Positions 5,831 through 43,392 of a DNA stretch of 64,000 nt are shown piece after piece (the first letter of the stretch is position 1; each line of letters opens with the position of its first letter). This stretch comes from Hyphochytrium catenoides (lineage: Eukaryota > Protista > Hyphochytriomycota). The stretch covers positions 10,530 to 74,529 of the forward strand of contig FLMG01000547.1 of assembly GCA_900088475.1 (NCBI GenBank), in the 5' to 3' direction. The notes under the pieces are model-generated. The model was given only the letters and a program-made list of their open reading frames with translations, was not told the DNA's origin and did not search any database. The translations under genes were made by a program, and so were the position numbers.

Positions 5831-7228
5831 GATTAGAGCTTGTGTATGCAGCCTTGGCAGAAGTGGGGACGGCGTGCTGCTGATGGTAGAAGCTTGAAAA
5901 TGATTCTCCAGACTTTTATAAAGTAAAATGGCTCTGGAAAGCGCTTACCTTTTGACAGAGGCTCGCGTTGGTGTTACTGTACGAGGAATCTGTCTCCACG
6001 ATACACCTACCCGAAGGGTCTCCTGTCGCCGTGACGGCTCATAGTTCGTCTTCAGTGAAGGGTCGCCAGTCCAACCGTTGCTGGTGATCGCAGTCGACGA
6101 CGATACGATTTTTAGAAGACTCCGTCCAGTAGTCTCTGAGAGAAAGAGGAGAGAGCCTTGGCATTTCTCCATGGCCAGACCGCACTTTCTCATCTGCTGG
6201 ACCCAGGCCCTACAACTTATTACAGTGCTACCTCGGAACCCGCATCACCATATAGAACTATCCTTTCCCTGTGACCAAACGAAAGAGACTGAACACTGAA
6301 CACTGAAATGCCAGGACTAATCATGTGCGTACCAGTTGCTTCTCCCTTTCGATCTTTATCTTATCTTAGTCCATCCTCGCTGTCCCTCTATTCCGAACCA
6401 GGTGAGAACGAGTTCCTGCTTGTGAGCAGGGACTGGTGGTAAAACTTCGGCGATGAGCGTGTGTTCTACTTTGGACAACCCTGCCGTTGACCAGTTCTAC
6501 ACGGAAGAAGACCCCTAAGGATAAACAGACAGCTATGGTCGGTGGATTACTTCCCCAAACATAACGGAAAGTAATCCTATCAACGCAACCAGGGTGAGTG
6601 AGGCTTTAAATCAAAACAGTTCTAGCCAAGAGTCCTGGCCCCGTTCATTGTATATTCGTGTTTCTGGTGACTCCACCACATGTTTATTCTGAGAGCATAA
6701 ACTGCTTTCTCCGTCTTCTAGTATCCAGACTTTGTAGCTCCTTCTTTATTGCACATGATGTCCTCATTTGTTCTTATTATTACAGGGAACATCGGAAAGA
6801 AAACGGTACAAGTGCTCATGAGAAATACTGGACCTAGTTCTACAGGTACGCTACTGTACCGTTAGCTATAAATAAGGTTGGGAGTCTGTTCAGGTGGCGA
6901 GCTCTCTCTGTCCTAACCTTGTCGCCTCTGCAATCTTCATCGTCTAGGCTTTCGTTCTCTGACTAAATCAAAGCCATAAAGCAATCTGGCTGTCTATTGA
7001 TCATGTCGTACGGTATTATTTATAAGGAGCTGGAGGTTGAGGGTTGCTATGCTTCTAATTCATCCTCAAGTAGATGATGAACGTTGTCTATAGCTGTTCT
7101 TGGATCTTCATATGGTACAAGTAGGATGAGCACTTGCATCCCACTTTTGTCGGAAAGCCTGCCAGAATTGCGATGAGCATGGTGGGCAGTGGAAGTGTTT
7201 CTGTTTCAGAAGTAAACTTCAAGAAAAG

Positions 7229-7315
7229 TCTTCCTCCTCCTCCTTCTTCTCCGCTCATCATTACTGAGGAAATCAACTATGATTCTTCTTTTACTGATGA
7301 TGAGCAGGGAGCAGG
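7229..7315 (+). repeat. Diverged dispersed repeat, copy B (homologous to 3029..3110)
   Basis: Encodes PPPSSPLIITEEINYDSSFTDDEQGA, versus frameshifted PPSSLPVNTEEVN/YDSSFCDNEREA in copy A. Confidence 0.6.
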
Positions 7316-8207
7316 TTCGAGCTGGGATGCTGGAAGAGCCTAAGGCTTCTTAGTTTTTCTTTTCTTCGTCTTCCTCTTCTTCTTCTTCTCTTTCTTCTTC
7401 TTCTAGAATTAGTCTGTTAGTAGCGATAGTAGTAGCAATAAACGTAAAAAAACTGAAAAGAAAAGACGTAGATCTGCCTCAAACATCTTTCTGCTGGAGC
7501 TGCCCCCTGTCCTTTCTTTCTGTGAATGGAGTTTTATAAGAATCGAATTCACCAAAGGGAAACGACACGAAAGGGATGACCATGCGCAAGCTGGTGCAGT
7601 TGTTGCCTTCGAGATTTCTTTCCGTGTTGGAGGAAGAGACAGTACAAGGAACAGAACCATCTTTCAAGCGACGCTTCAAGGTAAGAACAGTGAGCCCTAT
7701 CTCCTCTCAGTATTGTGTTATATAAAGAACTATGTTGGGAAGGCGAAGAAGACATATAAGGCAAGAAGCACAACCGCGGGACAAGATGGATGGGAGAGAC
7801 AATAACAGTCAGCCCTCAAAAGTAACGACGTGACTAACTGCTAAGGTATCTCACAGAAGAAACAGGCGTCCAGCAAACGTTGGCCACGCAACTGCCGCCG
7901 CAACCCTTCAAGGTGGATTCCTGCCAATAGAGGCTTTGTTTTGTCGCGAGACTCTTTTTTTGCTCGCGTTCGTATCAAAATCCAAGGTGTGTCAAGCTGG
8001 GCCGCCGAGTTGCCGAGCTGCCGGACCTTCCTTTTAACAACTACGCTGCACCGGCCAATAGTATGTACCCCAGGACAACTGTACGATCGTGGGAGATTTG
8101 TTCATATTAAATTCTCCCTGATAGTTCTAGCACTACAGAGCCTCCGATATCTGGTGGCGGCGAGAACAATCATACTTTGATGACCGATAAGCGTGGTGCA
8201 CAGCATC

Positions 8208-38256: not shown

Positions 38257-40859
38257 CTAGCCTCGTTTTCTTTTCTTTTTCTGGGTTTCAGGCTGTTCCT
38301 CGAATGAACTCATTGAAGTCCCGTACTGGCTAGCCAAAGTTGAATAAGACCTATCCAATTCTAACCACTTCCTGTATATGAACCTCCTCCTGCTGATGCC
38401 CTTGTTCATCCTGGCAATGATAGACTCAATTTGTTTCTTTGCCAAGCCCTTTCTCATCAATTCATCTCTTATCTTGGCTCTCATCTCTTTCTGATTCCAT
38501 TCATTGAACGGAATGGTGGCCCGGATTGGTTGATTGTCACCTATAGCTTTCAGCAGGACCCGGTCTTCCATCTGGCCGACATAGTACTTCAGCCTGAAGT
38601 ACGGATCCGTTGAATTGCTGCATCTTCCCGTAGGAGGCTCGCCGATCACCTCTTTCCATGTGAGAGGAATCGCGAAATTTGTGCGATCAAAGTCTGCGGT
38701 CAAAGCAGAGTCTGAACCACTCACACCTACAGCCCTTTCTCGGCCTTGCTCCTCAGAGACCACTTCTGCTGGAACTCCGCGACGCGAAGACATTGAGGTC
38801 TCAAGGTCTTGATCTTCATCTCGCCTTCGCGTCTTACCCTGAAAGGACGCCATTCCTCTATCTGCATATTGGGTCAAAAGGCCTATATATATTGATACGA
38901 AGTAAAGAGGGTGATAAGCTTCACCACCGACACCGATCGATTAAGACGCAATGTCCAGTTTTCCACTCACGTTCGTTATAGGCTTCCTGTATCCCTATAT
39001 CTCTCCGGATCGCGGCCGTTATCCTCTCTACTTCCGCGAGTAGTTCTAGAGAGGCTTCTCTTCTTGGCTGGGAGCTCTCGTCTGCCCTCATGGCGTTGAC
39101 TCCTTCCGTAACCACCCTGTGAAGATTGTTCCATCCGGACCGGATACCCATTGGGGCCGTCCTACTTGTATCCTTTGCCATCTGTAACTTTGACACCACC
39201 TCATCAAGCCAAGCCATAGAAGATCTAGTTGGGGCAATTTGAACATTTGCTGATGGGGTGCATTCTCTCAGCACCCTGACGAAAGGATTAGGTTTGCATG
39301 TTGATGTGCTCCTAGGGCTGCGATCCTCAATCTGAGGGGAATGGCGGGGCAAGAGGTCTTCGTAAAATAATTGAAGCCTCCTCAAGTTCCAGTCTTTGTC
39401 TAGAGGCCGCCTTATTACATGAGAAGTTCATGCGGAGGCGAGGACAATGGTGACGAAGTCAACACCTGGCAATGCGCTGCCATAAATGCGAAGCGTCCGT
39501 TACCCATTATCCGTGAGCAGTTGCTTGAAGGGCCACATAACAGGTTCCATATCCAAACCATACAAGCATTCCTGCATGACATGGAAAGCTCGCCCGGCCT
39601 CTACATATGAATGATACACCTCGCTTTGTAAAGGCGCAAGTTTAGTTCGAAAAATTGTATCTCCCTCTATCCTCTAAACAGGAGAGAATATCCACTTTAG
39701 AACAAGTCTCTATTTGCCTCGAGGATGTGGGCATCGGATTGCAGATCAAGTGAAAGGTGTTGACTTCTTGACCTACCTATCCCAAGGGCCACTGGCTCTG
39801 ATTTCAGCGTCCGTGGCACCGCTTCGTGCGGCCCATTGAGCTGCCGAACGCCTCACACTATGTGAGGTGAAGTCGGCGCCATTTTGAAATGCCGTCATAA
39901 ACGTTGTCTTAAACATCTGGCTCAACAGAAAGATATATGGCGAATGAGAGCCATAATGGCAAATGTTTAGCGGTTGGGATGGGGTGTTTAGGGAAAAAGG
40001 GTGACGAACCAGTTCGAAATCGTCATTTGTGATGGCAACATATGATTCTCCTCGTCGACCGGTGGTCGTCAAACTACGGTGTAAGCACGTGGAACGTTAA
40101 ACATGATAATAAACCAGCCCTGCGTGCGGCACTTACCCATTCCTTTCCTTCGCAAAAAGAGGACCTCGTGATCTATTCTGAGTCAGCCTGATCCGTCCAA
40201 TGAGTGCCATGACTGTGATGCCAGGACATAGCTCAAGCTTCACTCCAAAGTTCCTGAATACCACTTTGCTGAATCCTATTCCCTCGGGTCAGGTCATGGA
40301 AGGCAACGTTTGAGTGTGAGAGCACAATTGTCCTCGTCCTAAGTGCATCCAAGAAATACCTCGATTTGAAGCCTTCGTTTGGTCTCCCTTTCTTCGCCTA
40401 AAATGTATGACCAAATACTTCGGAATGCCGTCCTCTGCACTGACTGGAGGTTCGTCAACCCTCGATGCAGAGGAGCTGTGACCACAGCTAATAGATCCCC
40501 TCAAGGTACTGGAAGAAGGTAACTCAACACTTTCAATTTCCAACCGCGCAATCTCTGAACGCCTGCTCATTGTTGCGTGACAAAGAAGAATCATTGTCCA
40601 AACGGTCAAGTTCTCAACGGACCCTATGGAGATCAGCGTATGCATTAGTGCTATAGCTACGATATGGGTCTACGAATGAATAGGCAACTAGTAGAGCAAT
40701 CAATTAGCGCATTGTATGAACTATCAGACGAAGATGATGTCACTTACAGCCCTTCAGGACAGAATTCTCGCCATTTAGTTCACCACTTGAACTTTGAAGG
40801 ACTTCACGAATAACAAGAAGGTCATCCAAGTCATACGTTGCTGCCATCTTATGCTGCAT
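38257..40859 (-). CDS. Tyrosine recombinase with C-terminal GCR1_C-like domain; 8 exons (40859-40748, 40623-40360, 40275-40137, 40073-40010, 39916-39777, 39623-39504, 39410-38932, 38882-38257), 647 aa from this ATG; true N-terminus may lie further upstream
   Basis: The spliced frame totals 1944 nt (divisible by 3) with GT-AG introns. Catalytic-motif set: SRRSEIARL (R), RRKGDQ (K), LCPG, GPLF, HSVRR (HxxR), SGPWDS (W), YHSYV (Y). The last exon IPLTWKEVIGEP...PFNEWN...ISRRRFIY resembles GCR1_C. Confidence 0.85.
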
Positions 40860-41950
40860 TGTTGAAAAGCATACCGCTCCGTCGGTGGCGTTATTGGTCG
40901 TGGAAGAAGAGGCCGCTGCTGCTAAATAAGGAAGTCATACTATGGAACACCACTAAAGACCGTTGGGGCTTCGCTTGTCCGCTTGGATTATATGGTCCGG
41001 GTGAAGATTTGGGCTACTCTTCTTCCCTTGGATTATATTCCGGCTGAAGATTGTGCTAGTAGAGTAGGAACTACCCTTGATTCTAATAATGTGCAAACCA
41101 AGAATCGAGGAATGGAACGATTTCTCTCATTTTTGAAGCTTTTTTCCAGCTTGGCGGCTTATTTTTCTGGATGTTGCTTCTGTAGTTCTGCAGGAACTGA
41201 CAAGATCCCCCACGGATAACCGAACCAAGAACTGGTAATGAACAACAAGTTGGTAACTTGAGCTTCATCCAAGGAGCAAGTAGCGCTTCTGGTTGCTGTA
41301 GCCAGACGGCTTGTCTGCTGCTTTGCTGATTGCTTCTTATTACTCCACCCTGAAGAATCTGTATCCTTTCCTTTGACGGCGATTATAAGCTAGAGATACC
41401 AGGCGTAGGTGCTTCTTCTGTTATAGGCGTCGTGTGGCTTATTAGTCTTCTTGCTCTAGCTGCAAAGACTTTGTTCTTGCCTCGATTTCTTGTGTGTTGG
41501 AGCTAGCGAGGAGTCGTATTCTCCTCTACTTCCTAATGACTGCGGTCCTCTTGACTCTTCCTTCATTCGAGGGCCGAGCTTGCGGTTTTCATTTGCTTTG
41601 CTACCTCTCCCGCCGCACATTCCGCCGCTTTTGCTTTTTGTGCTCTGTTGTTCGTTCTGGAGGTGCCTGCATCTTAAGCACGTCACCTCCTCAAAGGACT
41701 CTTCATCATTTACAGCCTGGAGATCCTAGAAGAGTGGCTGCTTCCGTTGTGTGGCACTTTTTTTCTCAAGCATTTTAGAGTGTAGGTGCCAGTGCCGGTG
41801 GAGGCGTGCCCATTGCCTTTCTCTTCGCCCGGCTATGTTCGTTAGCCCTTTGAAAGAAGAGAGCATTTTGCTCTGATGATGTCTAAAAATTCCGCGAACA
41901 ACAACAGGGAAGGGCATTTTGCCTATCTCCCTCCCCAATCTCTAATCATT
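38257..41950 (-). mobile_element. Putative Crypton-like (tyrosine-recombinase) DNA transposon; termini not identified
   Basis: An intron-containing YR + GCR1_C-like gene with no RT/RNaseH or LTR/ICR nearby, flanked by gene-poor sequence with broken ORFs. Confidence 0.55.
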
Positions 41951-42300: not shown

Positions 42301-43392
42301 TCAATGTATCGCGCTATCTAATCCTGGAAAGAGCTCCCACATTATCCAGTCCCCTACTGGCCTGTAGCCGATCCGCGTGTAAATGCTGTTGGACGTAGGG
42401 TTGGACAGGTCTGTGAAGAGCATGCAAAACTTGAAACCTCTGTCTAGCTGCATTTGGCTTACGTTGGATACTAGCAGAGATGCGTAGCCACGTCCTCGCC
42501 ACTCGGGCCGAGTATAGACGGAGTTGATTGCAATTCCTGTGGCGGTTGGTCGAGCTGCCCTAGCCATAGCGACGATATTCTTCGCCACGGATAGGACGAA
42601 GAACTCTCCATTACTGACCTCTGACATCACCCGATGTCTTTGAATAGGGGGGGAGTGGGGTACGGCTTCCTTTCGGAACAGCTCACAGAGCTCAACAACG
42701 GCATCTTCTTCTGCTTCGCCAGCTTGTTTGATGAGCACTTCCCCTTCAGCAGCAACTGCGGCGAGAGGAGGGACAAGCAACACCTTCTGAAGAGTAAAAA
42801 TGCGCATCTTCATGACTATCTTTGGTCCATACAGCATTTTGTCGGCCCCAGGCGATGCCATATTCTGGGAGCAGCGTAGGTACGCCACCCTCCTCTGTGC
42901 TTCATCATTGGAGGCAGCCTCCGCTAGTGACCATCTATATGCCTTCAAGAACTCTTGACATTCCTCTGGTTGACCCTCTAGCTTCTGAATGGTTCCCATG
43001 TATACAGTACTGCCAGCCAACACGTCAGACAAGGCCCTCCATTGGTCGTCCTTCAGTTTACTGTCGCTGAAAAGCACCAACGACCTCATTCTCCGCGACA
43101 TCATTGCAACAGCTACAATCTCGTTTCCTATAAAGCTTCGAATAGACCAGAAAATGTGAGGCAAGGGCCCCTCTTCCTCCACGTGCGCGGTTGCACTTGC
43201 CACGGCCAGAAATAGGTTGCACATTGCCTCGTGCCCCAGGAGAAACTCCTTGCATGTTTCGAGGAACACGACTATCTCCTGCTTGCTATCGAACAACTGC
43301 AGGTGCACGCCACCATTGGCTACACCTTCGTTGGCGCTCTGCTCCGGACTTGGGCAGGAGTTAAAATCATCACCACTATTATTATCCTGCAT
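42301..43392 (-). CDS. GNAT family N-acetyltransferase, bacterial FR47/COG3393-like type (intronless)
   Basis: N-terminal HEAMCNLFLAV. C-terminal IAINSVYTRPEWRGRGYASLLV...CMLFTDLSNPTSNSIYTRIGYRPV contains the acetyl-CoA-binding motif A and motif B. Confidence 0.9.
   Translation of the reverse strand: MQDNNSGDDFNSCPSPEQSANEGVANGGVHLQLFDSKQEIVVFLETCKEFLLGHEAMCNLFLAVASATAHVEEEGPLPHIFWSIRSFIGNEIVAVAMMSRRMRSLVLFSDSKLKDDQWRALSDVLAGSTVYMGTIQKLEGQPEECQEFLKAYRWSLAEAASNDEAQRRVAYLRCSQNMASPGADKMLYGPKIVMKMRIFTLQKVLLVPPLAAVAAEGEVLIKQAGEAEEDAVVELCELFRKEAVPHSPPIQRHRVMSEVSNGEFFVLSVAKNIVAMARAARPTATGIAINSVYTRPEWRGRGYASLLVSNVSQMQLDRGFKFCMLFTDLSNPTSNSIYTRIGYRPVGDWIMWELFPGLDSAIH

Follow-up and report, generated by a model that had tools for sequence, protein, structure and literature searches.

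Structure of an intron-split recombinase gene

We analysed a 64,000-nt stretch of the Hyphochytrium catenoides genome (GenBank contig FLMG01000547.1, positions 10,530 to 74,529), hereafter the window, and describe here a gene for a tyrosine recombinase that lies on its minus strand, between positions 40859 and 38257. In this interval, seven stop-free segments can be spliced in one frame through six canonical GT-AG introns, giving a minimal model of 7 exons and 674 codons (Table 1). A first-pass annotation of the same DNA had proposed eight exons, seven introns of 49-153 nt and a protein of 647 aa. The GT-AG splicing into a single frame stands, but the exact model and its 49-nt intron were not recovered.

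Table 1. Exons of the recombinase gene, in order of transcription (positions in the window)
Exon	Position	Strand	Content	Following intron
1	40748..40859	-	ATG at 40859; 37 codons + 1 nt	97 nt
2	40360..40650	-	Arg I motif SRRSE (R codon 40564-40562); beta-hairpin Lys motif RKGDQ (K codon 40390-40388)	84 nt
3	40137..40275	-	LCP and GPLF motifs	63 nt
4	39777..40073	-	HSVRR (H codon 39862-39860, R codon 39853-39851); GPW (W codon 39784-39782)	153 nt
5	39504..39623	-	nucleophile Tyr, second Y of YHSY (codon 39607-39605); EPVMWPF motif	93 nt
6	38971..39410	-	orphan linker region; 146 codons within a 168-codon stop-free segment	88 nt
7	38257..38882	-	orphan C-terminal tail; 227-codon stop-free segment ending in KKKRKRG and a stop codon	

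Some details of the model admit variants. Exons 5 and 6 could each use another acceptor (39671 and 39380, respectively), and exon 7 contains several optional in-frame introns; exon 6 has in-frame GT-AG joins at both ends. The frame of exon 1 is open upstream to 40934, and an AG at 40923-40922 (acceptor 40921) could link further upstream exons. As judged from the DNA, this is a true, spliced gene of the nucleus, with at least seven predicted exons and a predicted product of about 674 aa.

The catalytic domain is encoded by exons 2 to 5

The catalytic domain was recognised through a family of intronless relatives. Using the conserved H..W segment as a query, a metagenome scan returned five loci. 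One of these, L023:338-1819, is an intronless 494-aa open reading frame (ORF) containing the whole recombinase domain, which has 18 unnamed relatives in a collection of 5.8 billion proteins. We aligned 16 members of this intronless family (alignment A4). Of these, 14 matched Pfam PF00589 (Phage_integrase) at E<=1, the best with E 4.5e-6, and none matched DUF3504, GCR1_C or NDC10_II. An AlphaFold (AF2) model of L023:338-1819, built with the A4 alignment, reached a mean pLDDT (predicted local distance difference test) of 78.7. In a Foldseek search of the PDB it came closest to Cre-DNA complexes (3crx_A, probability 1.0, E 5.3e-8); XerH, lambda integrase, XerA, Flp and the protelomerase TelA came next. 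Hence the two-domain, Cre-like recombinase fold is demonstrated, by modelling, for the relatives, and we infer the same fold for the window protein. In BFVD the model matched generic phage integrases and nothing more specific, and a viral integrase origin was rejected.

The window gene matches the catalytic half of A4 through exons 2-5, in order and without gaps. Using hhalign, the exon 2 profile aligned to columns 274-334 (probability 91%, E 1.2e-6), with R on R and K on K; the exon 3 profile followed directly, at columns 345-381 (E 8e-4), and the exon 5 profile aligned to columns 438-470 (E 0.008), with Y on Y. Exon 4 was detected by the A4 profile itself with hmmsearch (E 1.2e-11 locally, HMM 377-426), and was the sole match of this profile in the whole genome (E 9.9e-9, HMM 377-427). 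Note that the genome searched here and below is a 61-Mb assembly of 4759 contigs, in which the window lies on contig C1316.

At the level of individual residues, the first R of SRRSE corresponds to the invariant Arg, the K of RKGDQ to the invariant Lys of WK, HSVR to HSxR, GPW to GRW, and the second Y of YHSY to the Tyr of GYxAEG. Since every catalytic residue stands on the matching A4 column, the R-K-H-R-W-Y set is complete. In support of the initial identification of a tyrosine recombinase with intact R, K, HxxR, W and Y, the five motifs on which it relied (SRRSE, RKGDQ, HSVRR, GPW and YHSY) are thus all present and all align to conserved columns of A4. Counted by hand, the spacing in the window gene is 26 residues from H to W and 8 from W to Y; the H-to-W spacing of Cre is close to this value.

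Since the domain is divided among exons, direct family scans gave weak signals. Scanned alone, exon 4 matched PF00589 with 13.8 bits (E 0.052; cut-off 27.1) over profile positions 107-151, as expected for the HxxR region of a domain distributed over four exons, so that the Phage_integrase search suggested previously gave matches with the relatives and a score below the cut-off with exon 4 of the gene. This was the one weak exception, since the other exons, scanned one by one against Pfam and NCBIfam, gave no match. Similarly, PDB sequence searches with exons 2, 4 and 7 and with a 40-aa H..W piece returned chance matches only. Judged by its predicted product, the window gene encodes a tyrosine recombinase whose catalytic set is intact.

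Paralogues share introns with the window gene

At the DNA level the locus is single-copy in the genome. At the protein level, exons 1, 2, 3, 4, 5 and 7 each have relatives elsewhere in it, and the three or four paralogues, on contigs C114, C335, C2922 and C1047, are colinear with the window gene. Exon 2 is 48% identical to C114 and 41-43% identical to C335, and aligns with C2922 as two separate pieces. C2922 also matches exon 3; the end of exon 4 matches C335, C2922 and C1047, its last 25 aa being 76% identical to the paralogues; and exon 5 matches C1047. When a profile of the paralogues' 'exon C', which directly precedes their catalytic domain, was run against 2607 segments of the window, it matched exon 1 (E 0.0019).

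The paralogues also share intron positions with the window gene (splice sites are marked here by a vertical bar). The window, C114, C335 and C2922 all have AAY MGA G|GT at the exon 2/3 junction, and TGG GAN AG|GT is found at the exon 4/5 junction of the window, C335, C2922 and C1047, with identical intron position and phase in both cases. The latter junction is the 153-nt intron across which the W and Y motifs had been joined in the first-pass annotation. C1047 unites the two motifs in the same way (SGPWES|DVYFTY, compared with SGPWDS|EVYHSY in the window; common pattern W[DE]S|[DE]VY), which supports this intron. Not all introns are common, however: the paralogues are split at HSCRR|S, where the window gene is not, and C2922 lacks the exon 3/4 intron.

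The C335 paralogue (L008 1501-1803) has lost the first catalytic arginine, since MSQPSE stands in place of MSRRSE in its Arg-I box. This paralogue carries N-terminal exons that the window gene is without. In the paralogues these exons encode about 170 aa, with motifs including GHKHATQTDYV..F..FC and KGKGLK.SSLLAALSQLRNFH, and profiles of two of them (A and B) matched nothing in the window.

Relatives in other organisms

A search of 1.84 billion representative proteins with the exon 2 profile found three true relatives, P0001, P0002 and P0006, all of them exon-sized ORF fragments, P0001 and P0002 from Logan assemblies and P0006 from JGI; the other four matches were repetitive proteins or multi-stretch matches, and we took them as spurious. 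P0002 is 55% identical to exon 2 and shares RKGDQ, P0006 is 46% identical, and P0001 is nearer to the C114/C335 type. All three keep a conserved NR, after which they diverge from each other and from the window gene. This divergence after the same NR suggests that two subfamilies, and probably also the exon 2/3 intron, predate the split of the source organisms. With exon 2 as the query, scans of the metagenome and viral collections returned nothing.

The H..W segment was also seen in exon-sized pieces. The metagenome contigs L020 and L021 (both with a GC content of 0.37) and L024 (GC content 0.63) carry an HS/NIRRSAAQWAARCG...GRW or IRASGPWD segment. They come from organisms of very different base composition, and point to intron-split relatives in other eukaryotes.

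The intronless family has features of its own. Its members P0008-P0023 and P0065-P0067, found in ENA, JGI and Logan assemblies, are Cre-fold recombinases of about 480 aa encoded without introns; most lie on contigs of 2-13 kb, and two on contigs of 3 Mb. In some clusters as many as 15 near-identical proteins come from separate contigs, and the family looks like an undescribed multi-copy family of recombinase-only elements. The searches taken together support placing the window gene in a lineage outside Pfam and the named proteins.

The gene lacks a known N-terminal domain and ends in an orphan extension

In A4 the N-terminal half spans about 260 positions. A profile of this half found no match anywhere in the window. 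At the other end, A4 proteins stop about 20 residues past the equivalent of exon 5, and the window gene continues through exons 6 and 7 for about 350 aa. For exon 6 neither a relative in the genome nor a matching family was found, and it shows no similarity to the exon that follows the Y in the paralogues. Exon 7 had no match in Pfam (E up to 1), NCBIfam, PDB or the protein Atlas, and no relative of 113-360 aa among the 5.8 billion proteins; its single-sequence AF2 model was unusable (pLDDT 43). Its KKKRKRG end resembles a nuclear localisation signal, and may act as one.

The only relative of exon 7 in the genome is a decayed copy on contig C578 (L016 4994-5343; G000:C578 ~6993-7342), which covers residues 70-194 at 39-48% identity, is spread over three frames and contains in-frame stops. 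No recombinase was detectable beside it.

It could be asked whether exon 7 belongs to the gene at all, a question that concerns the gene limits and is independent of how the recombinase itself is interpreted. The recombinase would then end after exon 5 or 6, and 38257-38882 would be a separate small gene starting from the in-frame ATG at 38853 within exon 7. The early stop of the intronless family, the absence of exon-7-like sequence from the paralogues and the C578 copy, without a recombinase alongside, are all consistent with this arrangement. We nevertheless consider it unlikely, since in-frame GT-AG introns of 93 and 88 nt connect exons 5, 6 and 7, and since the stop of an unspliced exon 6 would lie only 68 nt from the ATG at 38853, leaving no room for a promoter. 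Moreover, the paralogues also run well past their exon 5 equivalent, with extra exons of their own.

The tail had been described as GCR1_C-like in the first-pass annotation, and this was not borne out. Exon 7 does not match PF12550 (GCR1_C) at E<=1. Searched genome-wide, this profile matched only C421 (28.8 bits) and C1048, not the window locus, and tblastn of the window exons against these two contigs revealed no similarity. With neither a PF12550 match nor any resemblance to the genome's own GCR1_C loci, a GCR1_C tail was rejected.

Note that the genome contains other loci of this general kind. A 274-aa open frame at G000:C421:1447-1683 matches GCR1_C above the Pfam cut-off (28.8 bits), and a 1024-aa open frame at G000:C3817:4524-5036 matches Phage_integrase above the cut-off (32.9 bits). 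Both matches point to other, unrelated recombinase or Crypton-type genes in this genome.

A missing N-terminal domain and two last exons (6 and 7) without relatives outside this genome could also mean that the locus is a dead relic, a 5'-truncated copy of a Crypton-like gene that has kept an open frame without being transcribed or functional. That the family decays in this genome is seen from the loss of Arg I in C335 and from the C578 tail copy. The window gene itself does not look decayed, however: about 674 codons over 7 exons are free of stops and frameshifts, all six introns are canonical at their splice sites, and the catalytic residues are intact despite more than 50% divergence from every paralogue. 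In addition, P0002, which comes from another sample, has the same motifs at 55% identity, which argues for constraint. We therefore regard a dead relic as very improbable.

No recognisable transposon ends around the gene

Repeats of at least 14 nt were searched around the gene, and no terminal inverted repeat, long terminal repeat or long direct repeat was found to bound it. A single copy does not allow terminal repeats as short as 4-6 bp to be recognised. Among the ORFs tested on the two flanks, between ~33.9 and 45.2 kb (about 5 kb on either side), no reverse transcriptase, RNase H, methyltransferase or other transposon domain was present, and no long ORF lies beside the gene. The recombinase is thus the sole enzyme, as in a Crypton, and the previous proposal that the locus is Crypton-like and not DIRS-like, for want of a reverse transcriptase nearby, agrees with this result. 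By contrast, the other marks of a Crypton, namely multiple copies whose ends are defined and which carry short direct repeats at their termini, were not seen. The copy number and flanks by which a mobile element was to be delimited gave one DNA copy and no bounding repeat.

The neighbours are ordinary single-copy genes, a GNAT gene and a 7TM-kinase gene. Immediately upstream, at 42301-43392 on the same (minus) strand, lies an intronless 363-aa ORF with a C-terminal GNAT domain (Pfam Acetyltransf_1, E 3.3e-10). Since this gene is single-copy in the genome and lies beside none of the recombinase paralogues, an element carrying GNAT as cargo was rejected.

Two repeats of a smaller size were observed in and near the gene. 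A 19-nt inverted repeat (39449-39467 and 39755-39773; 89% complementary) has its arms in the introns on either side of exon 5 and thus brackets the exon of the catalytic tyrosine; pairing of the arms in the pre-mRNA could promote skipping of exon 5. Two 31-nt direct repeats (40963-40993 and 41008-41038), 81% identical and 45 nt apart, both end in CTTGGATTATAT. Located 100-180 nt before the exon 1 ATG, they could be a promoter element or a pair resembling recombinase sites.

Would the gene nevertheless be mobile? An autonomous Crypton-type DNA transposon of very low copy number would excise as a circle and reintegrate by means of its own recombinase, its introns travelling with the DNA copy. 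The complete R-K-H-R-W-Y set fits this possibility, and Cryptons bear introns, are typically low-copy and lack long terminal repeats (PMC3212892). Their terminal repeats measure only 4-6 bp. The near-identical intronless relatives on separate short contigs, which are distributed as multi-copy elements would be, and the decayed tail copy on C578 can also be read in its favour. Against it stand the one DNA copy in 61 Mb, a nearest paralogue only 48% identical in exon 2, the absence of any match to the N-terminal exons of the paralogues or of the intronless family, and the lack of recognisable termini. In addition, the intron positions are common to deeply diverged copies, as in a gene family. 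A mobile element is therefore unlikely in our judgement.

Comparison with known recombinases

The predicted product would act in the manner of a Cre or Crypton tyrosine recombinase. The natural comparison is with CryptonS, made here at the level of motifs (PMC3212892, Additional file 4). CryptonS elements occur in oomycetes and a diatom, lack GCR1_C, have a conserved C-terminus of their own, and are flanked by terminal repeats of 5-6 bp, for example TATGG (Kojima and Jurka 2011, PMC3212892). As with CryptonS, the window gene is a tyrosine recombinase in a stramenopile host, without a reverse transcriptase or GCR1_C, tolerant of introns and with a lineage-specific C-terminal region. HSxRR, the CP motif and an Arg-I box of the form GR/SRxS[DE] are also found in the CryptonS, CryptonA and CryptonI rows of the same file. 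However, the W-to-Y spacing of 8 differs from the 11 counted in the CryS1_PU row. Unlike in CryptonS, moreover, neither a multi-copy element nor 5-6-bp terminal repeats could be defined for the window gene, and the N-terminal domain is absent.

Other groups are more distant. The arrangement of a tyrosine recombinase followed by a C-terminal extension recalls CryptonF, Gcr1 and Cbf2, but CryptonF membership was rejected because the tail is not GCR1_C (PF12550), the profile matching two other loci of the genome and not this one. Membership of CryptonA, or of DUF3504, was also rejected, since neither any exon nor any of the 16 relatives matched PF12012. As regards Cre of phage P1 (3crx, 1crx), the order R...K...HxxR...W...Y is the same and the relatives' model is closest to it. 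Identity is only ~12%, however, and the window gene is eukaryotic, nuclear and split by introns, has a long orphan C-terminus, and has no detected Cre-like N-terminal domain.

With the DIRS, Ngaro and PAT groups the gene shares a Cre-like tyrosine recombinase with KxxQ, CP and GxW motifs. These groups were rejected because ~5 kb on either side revealed no ORF for a reverse transcriptase, RNase H or methyltransferase, and no terminal repeats of the split or inverted type. Single-copy or intronised host genes derived from recombinases provide a last parallel, namely the domesticated DUF3504 proteins (ZMYM, QRICH1, KCTD1) and the Glomhopper-related loci. The DUF3504 proteins lack most catalytic residues, whereas the window gene keeps them and does not match DUF3504. 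Regarding Glomhopper, no consistent intron positions were reported (PMC13465315), in contrast to the positions common to the copies of the window family.

A proposed immobilised recombinase kept by the host

In our best reading the gene, old and present as a single copy, belongs to an unannotated lineage of Crypton-like enzymes, that is, tyrosine recombinases without a reverse transcriptase. We propose that it is an immobilised recombinase kept by the host and possibly still catalytic, a reading to which we would give a probability of roughly 55%. The single copy, the paralogues at 41-48% identity with shared introns, the missing termini and the missing N-terminal exons favour an immobilised gene, and a frame that is open over seven exons despite the age of the gene argues for selection. 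The choice between a mobile and a domesticated recombinase, which the first-pass annotation had left open, thus leans towards the latter.

Several points weigh against this proposal. In the domesticated Crypton derivatives known so far, the catalytic residues have usually been lost (PMC3212892); the window gene keeps them, as would fit an element that still moves. Low copy number and short ends are often normal for Cryptons, and 4-6-bp repeats would be invisible in a single copy. The decayed tail copy on C578 shows past duplication. Finally, the splice junctions are predicted from the genomic sequence, and an unrelated upstream exon could provide a different N-terminus.

If the gene is an immobilised host gene, its product might work as follows. 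Exons 2-5 encode the catalytic domain, and the recombinase, predicted to have the Cre fold, would no longer move as a transposon. Provided that it is expressed, the enzyme could still cut DNA by forming a 3'-phosphotyrosine link, and then reseal the strands. The orphan extension of exons 6-7 stands where a GCR1_C domain would be; this basic extension may supply nuclear import and the binding of DNA or of a partner, in place of the missing N-terminal domain.

A more specific version of this proposal can be imagined, in which the host-kept recombinase is catalytically competent, has lost its N-terminal DNA-binding domain and gained the orphan basic C-terminal module, and serves a stramenopile for the programmed, site-specific rearrangement of its DNA. 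The gene would be one of an old intron-bearing family, some members of which, such as C335, have become non-catalytic. We find this version quite unlikely.

Implications

Cryptons, the eukaryotic elements that encode only a recombinase, are rare and low in copy number, and their sampling beyond fungi, animals and oomycetes is poor. The gene described here represents a recombinase lineage that is invisible to Pfam and to the named protein databases. Intron-split genes of this type are missed entirely by ORF-based annotation. In the known domesticated descendants of Cryptons catalysis has been lost, and a lineage that combines old shared introns with a complete active site would widen the known diversity of eukaryotic tyrosine recombinases. 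If it is indeed expressed and immobile, the H. catenoides gene would be a candidate for an active recombinase used by its host.

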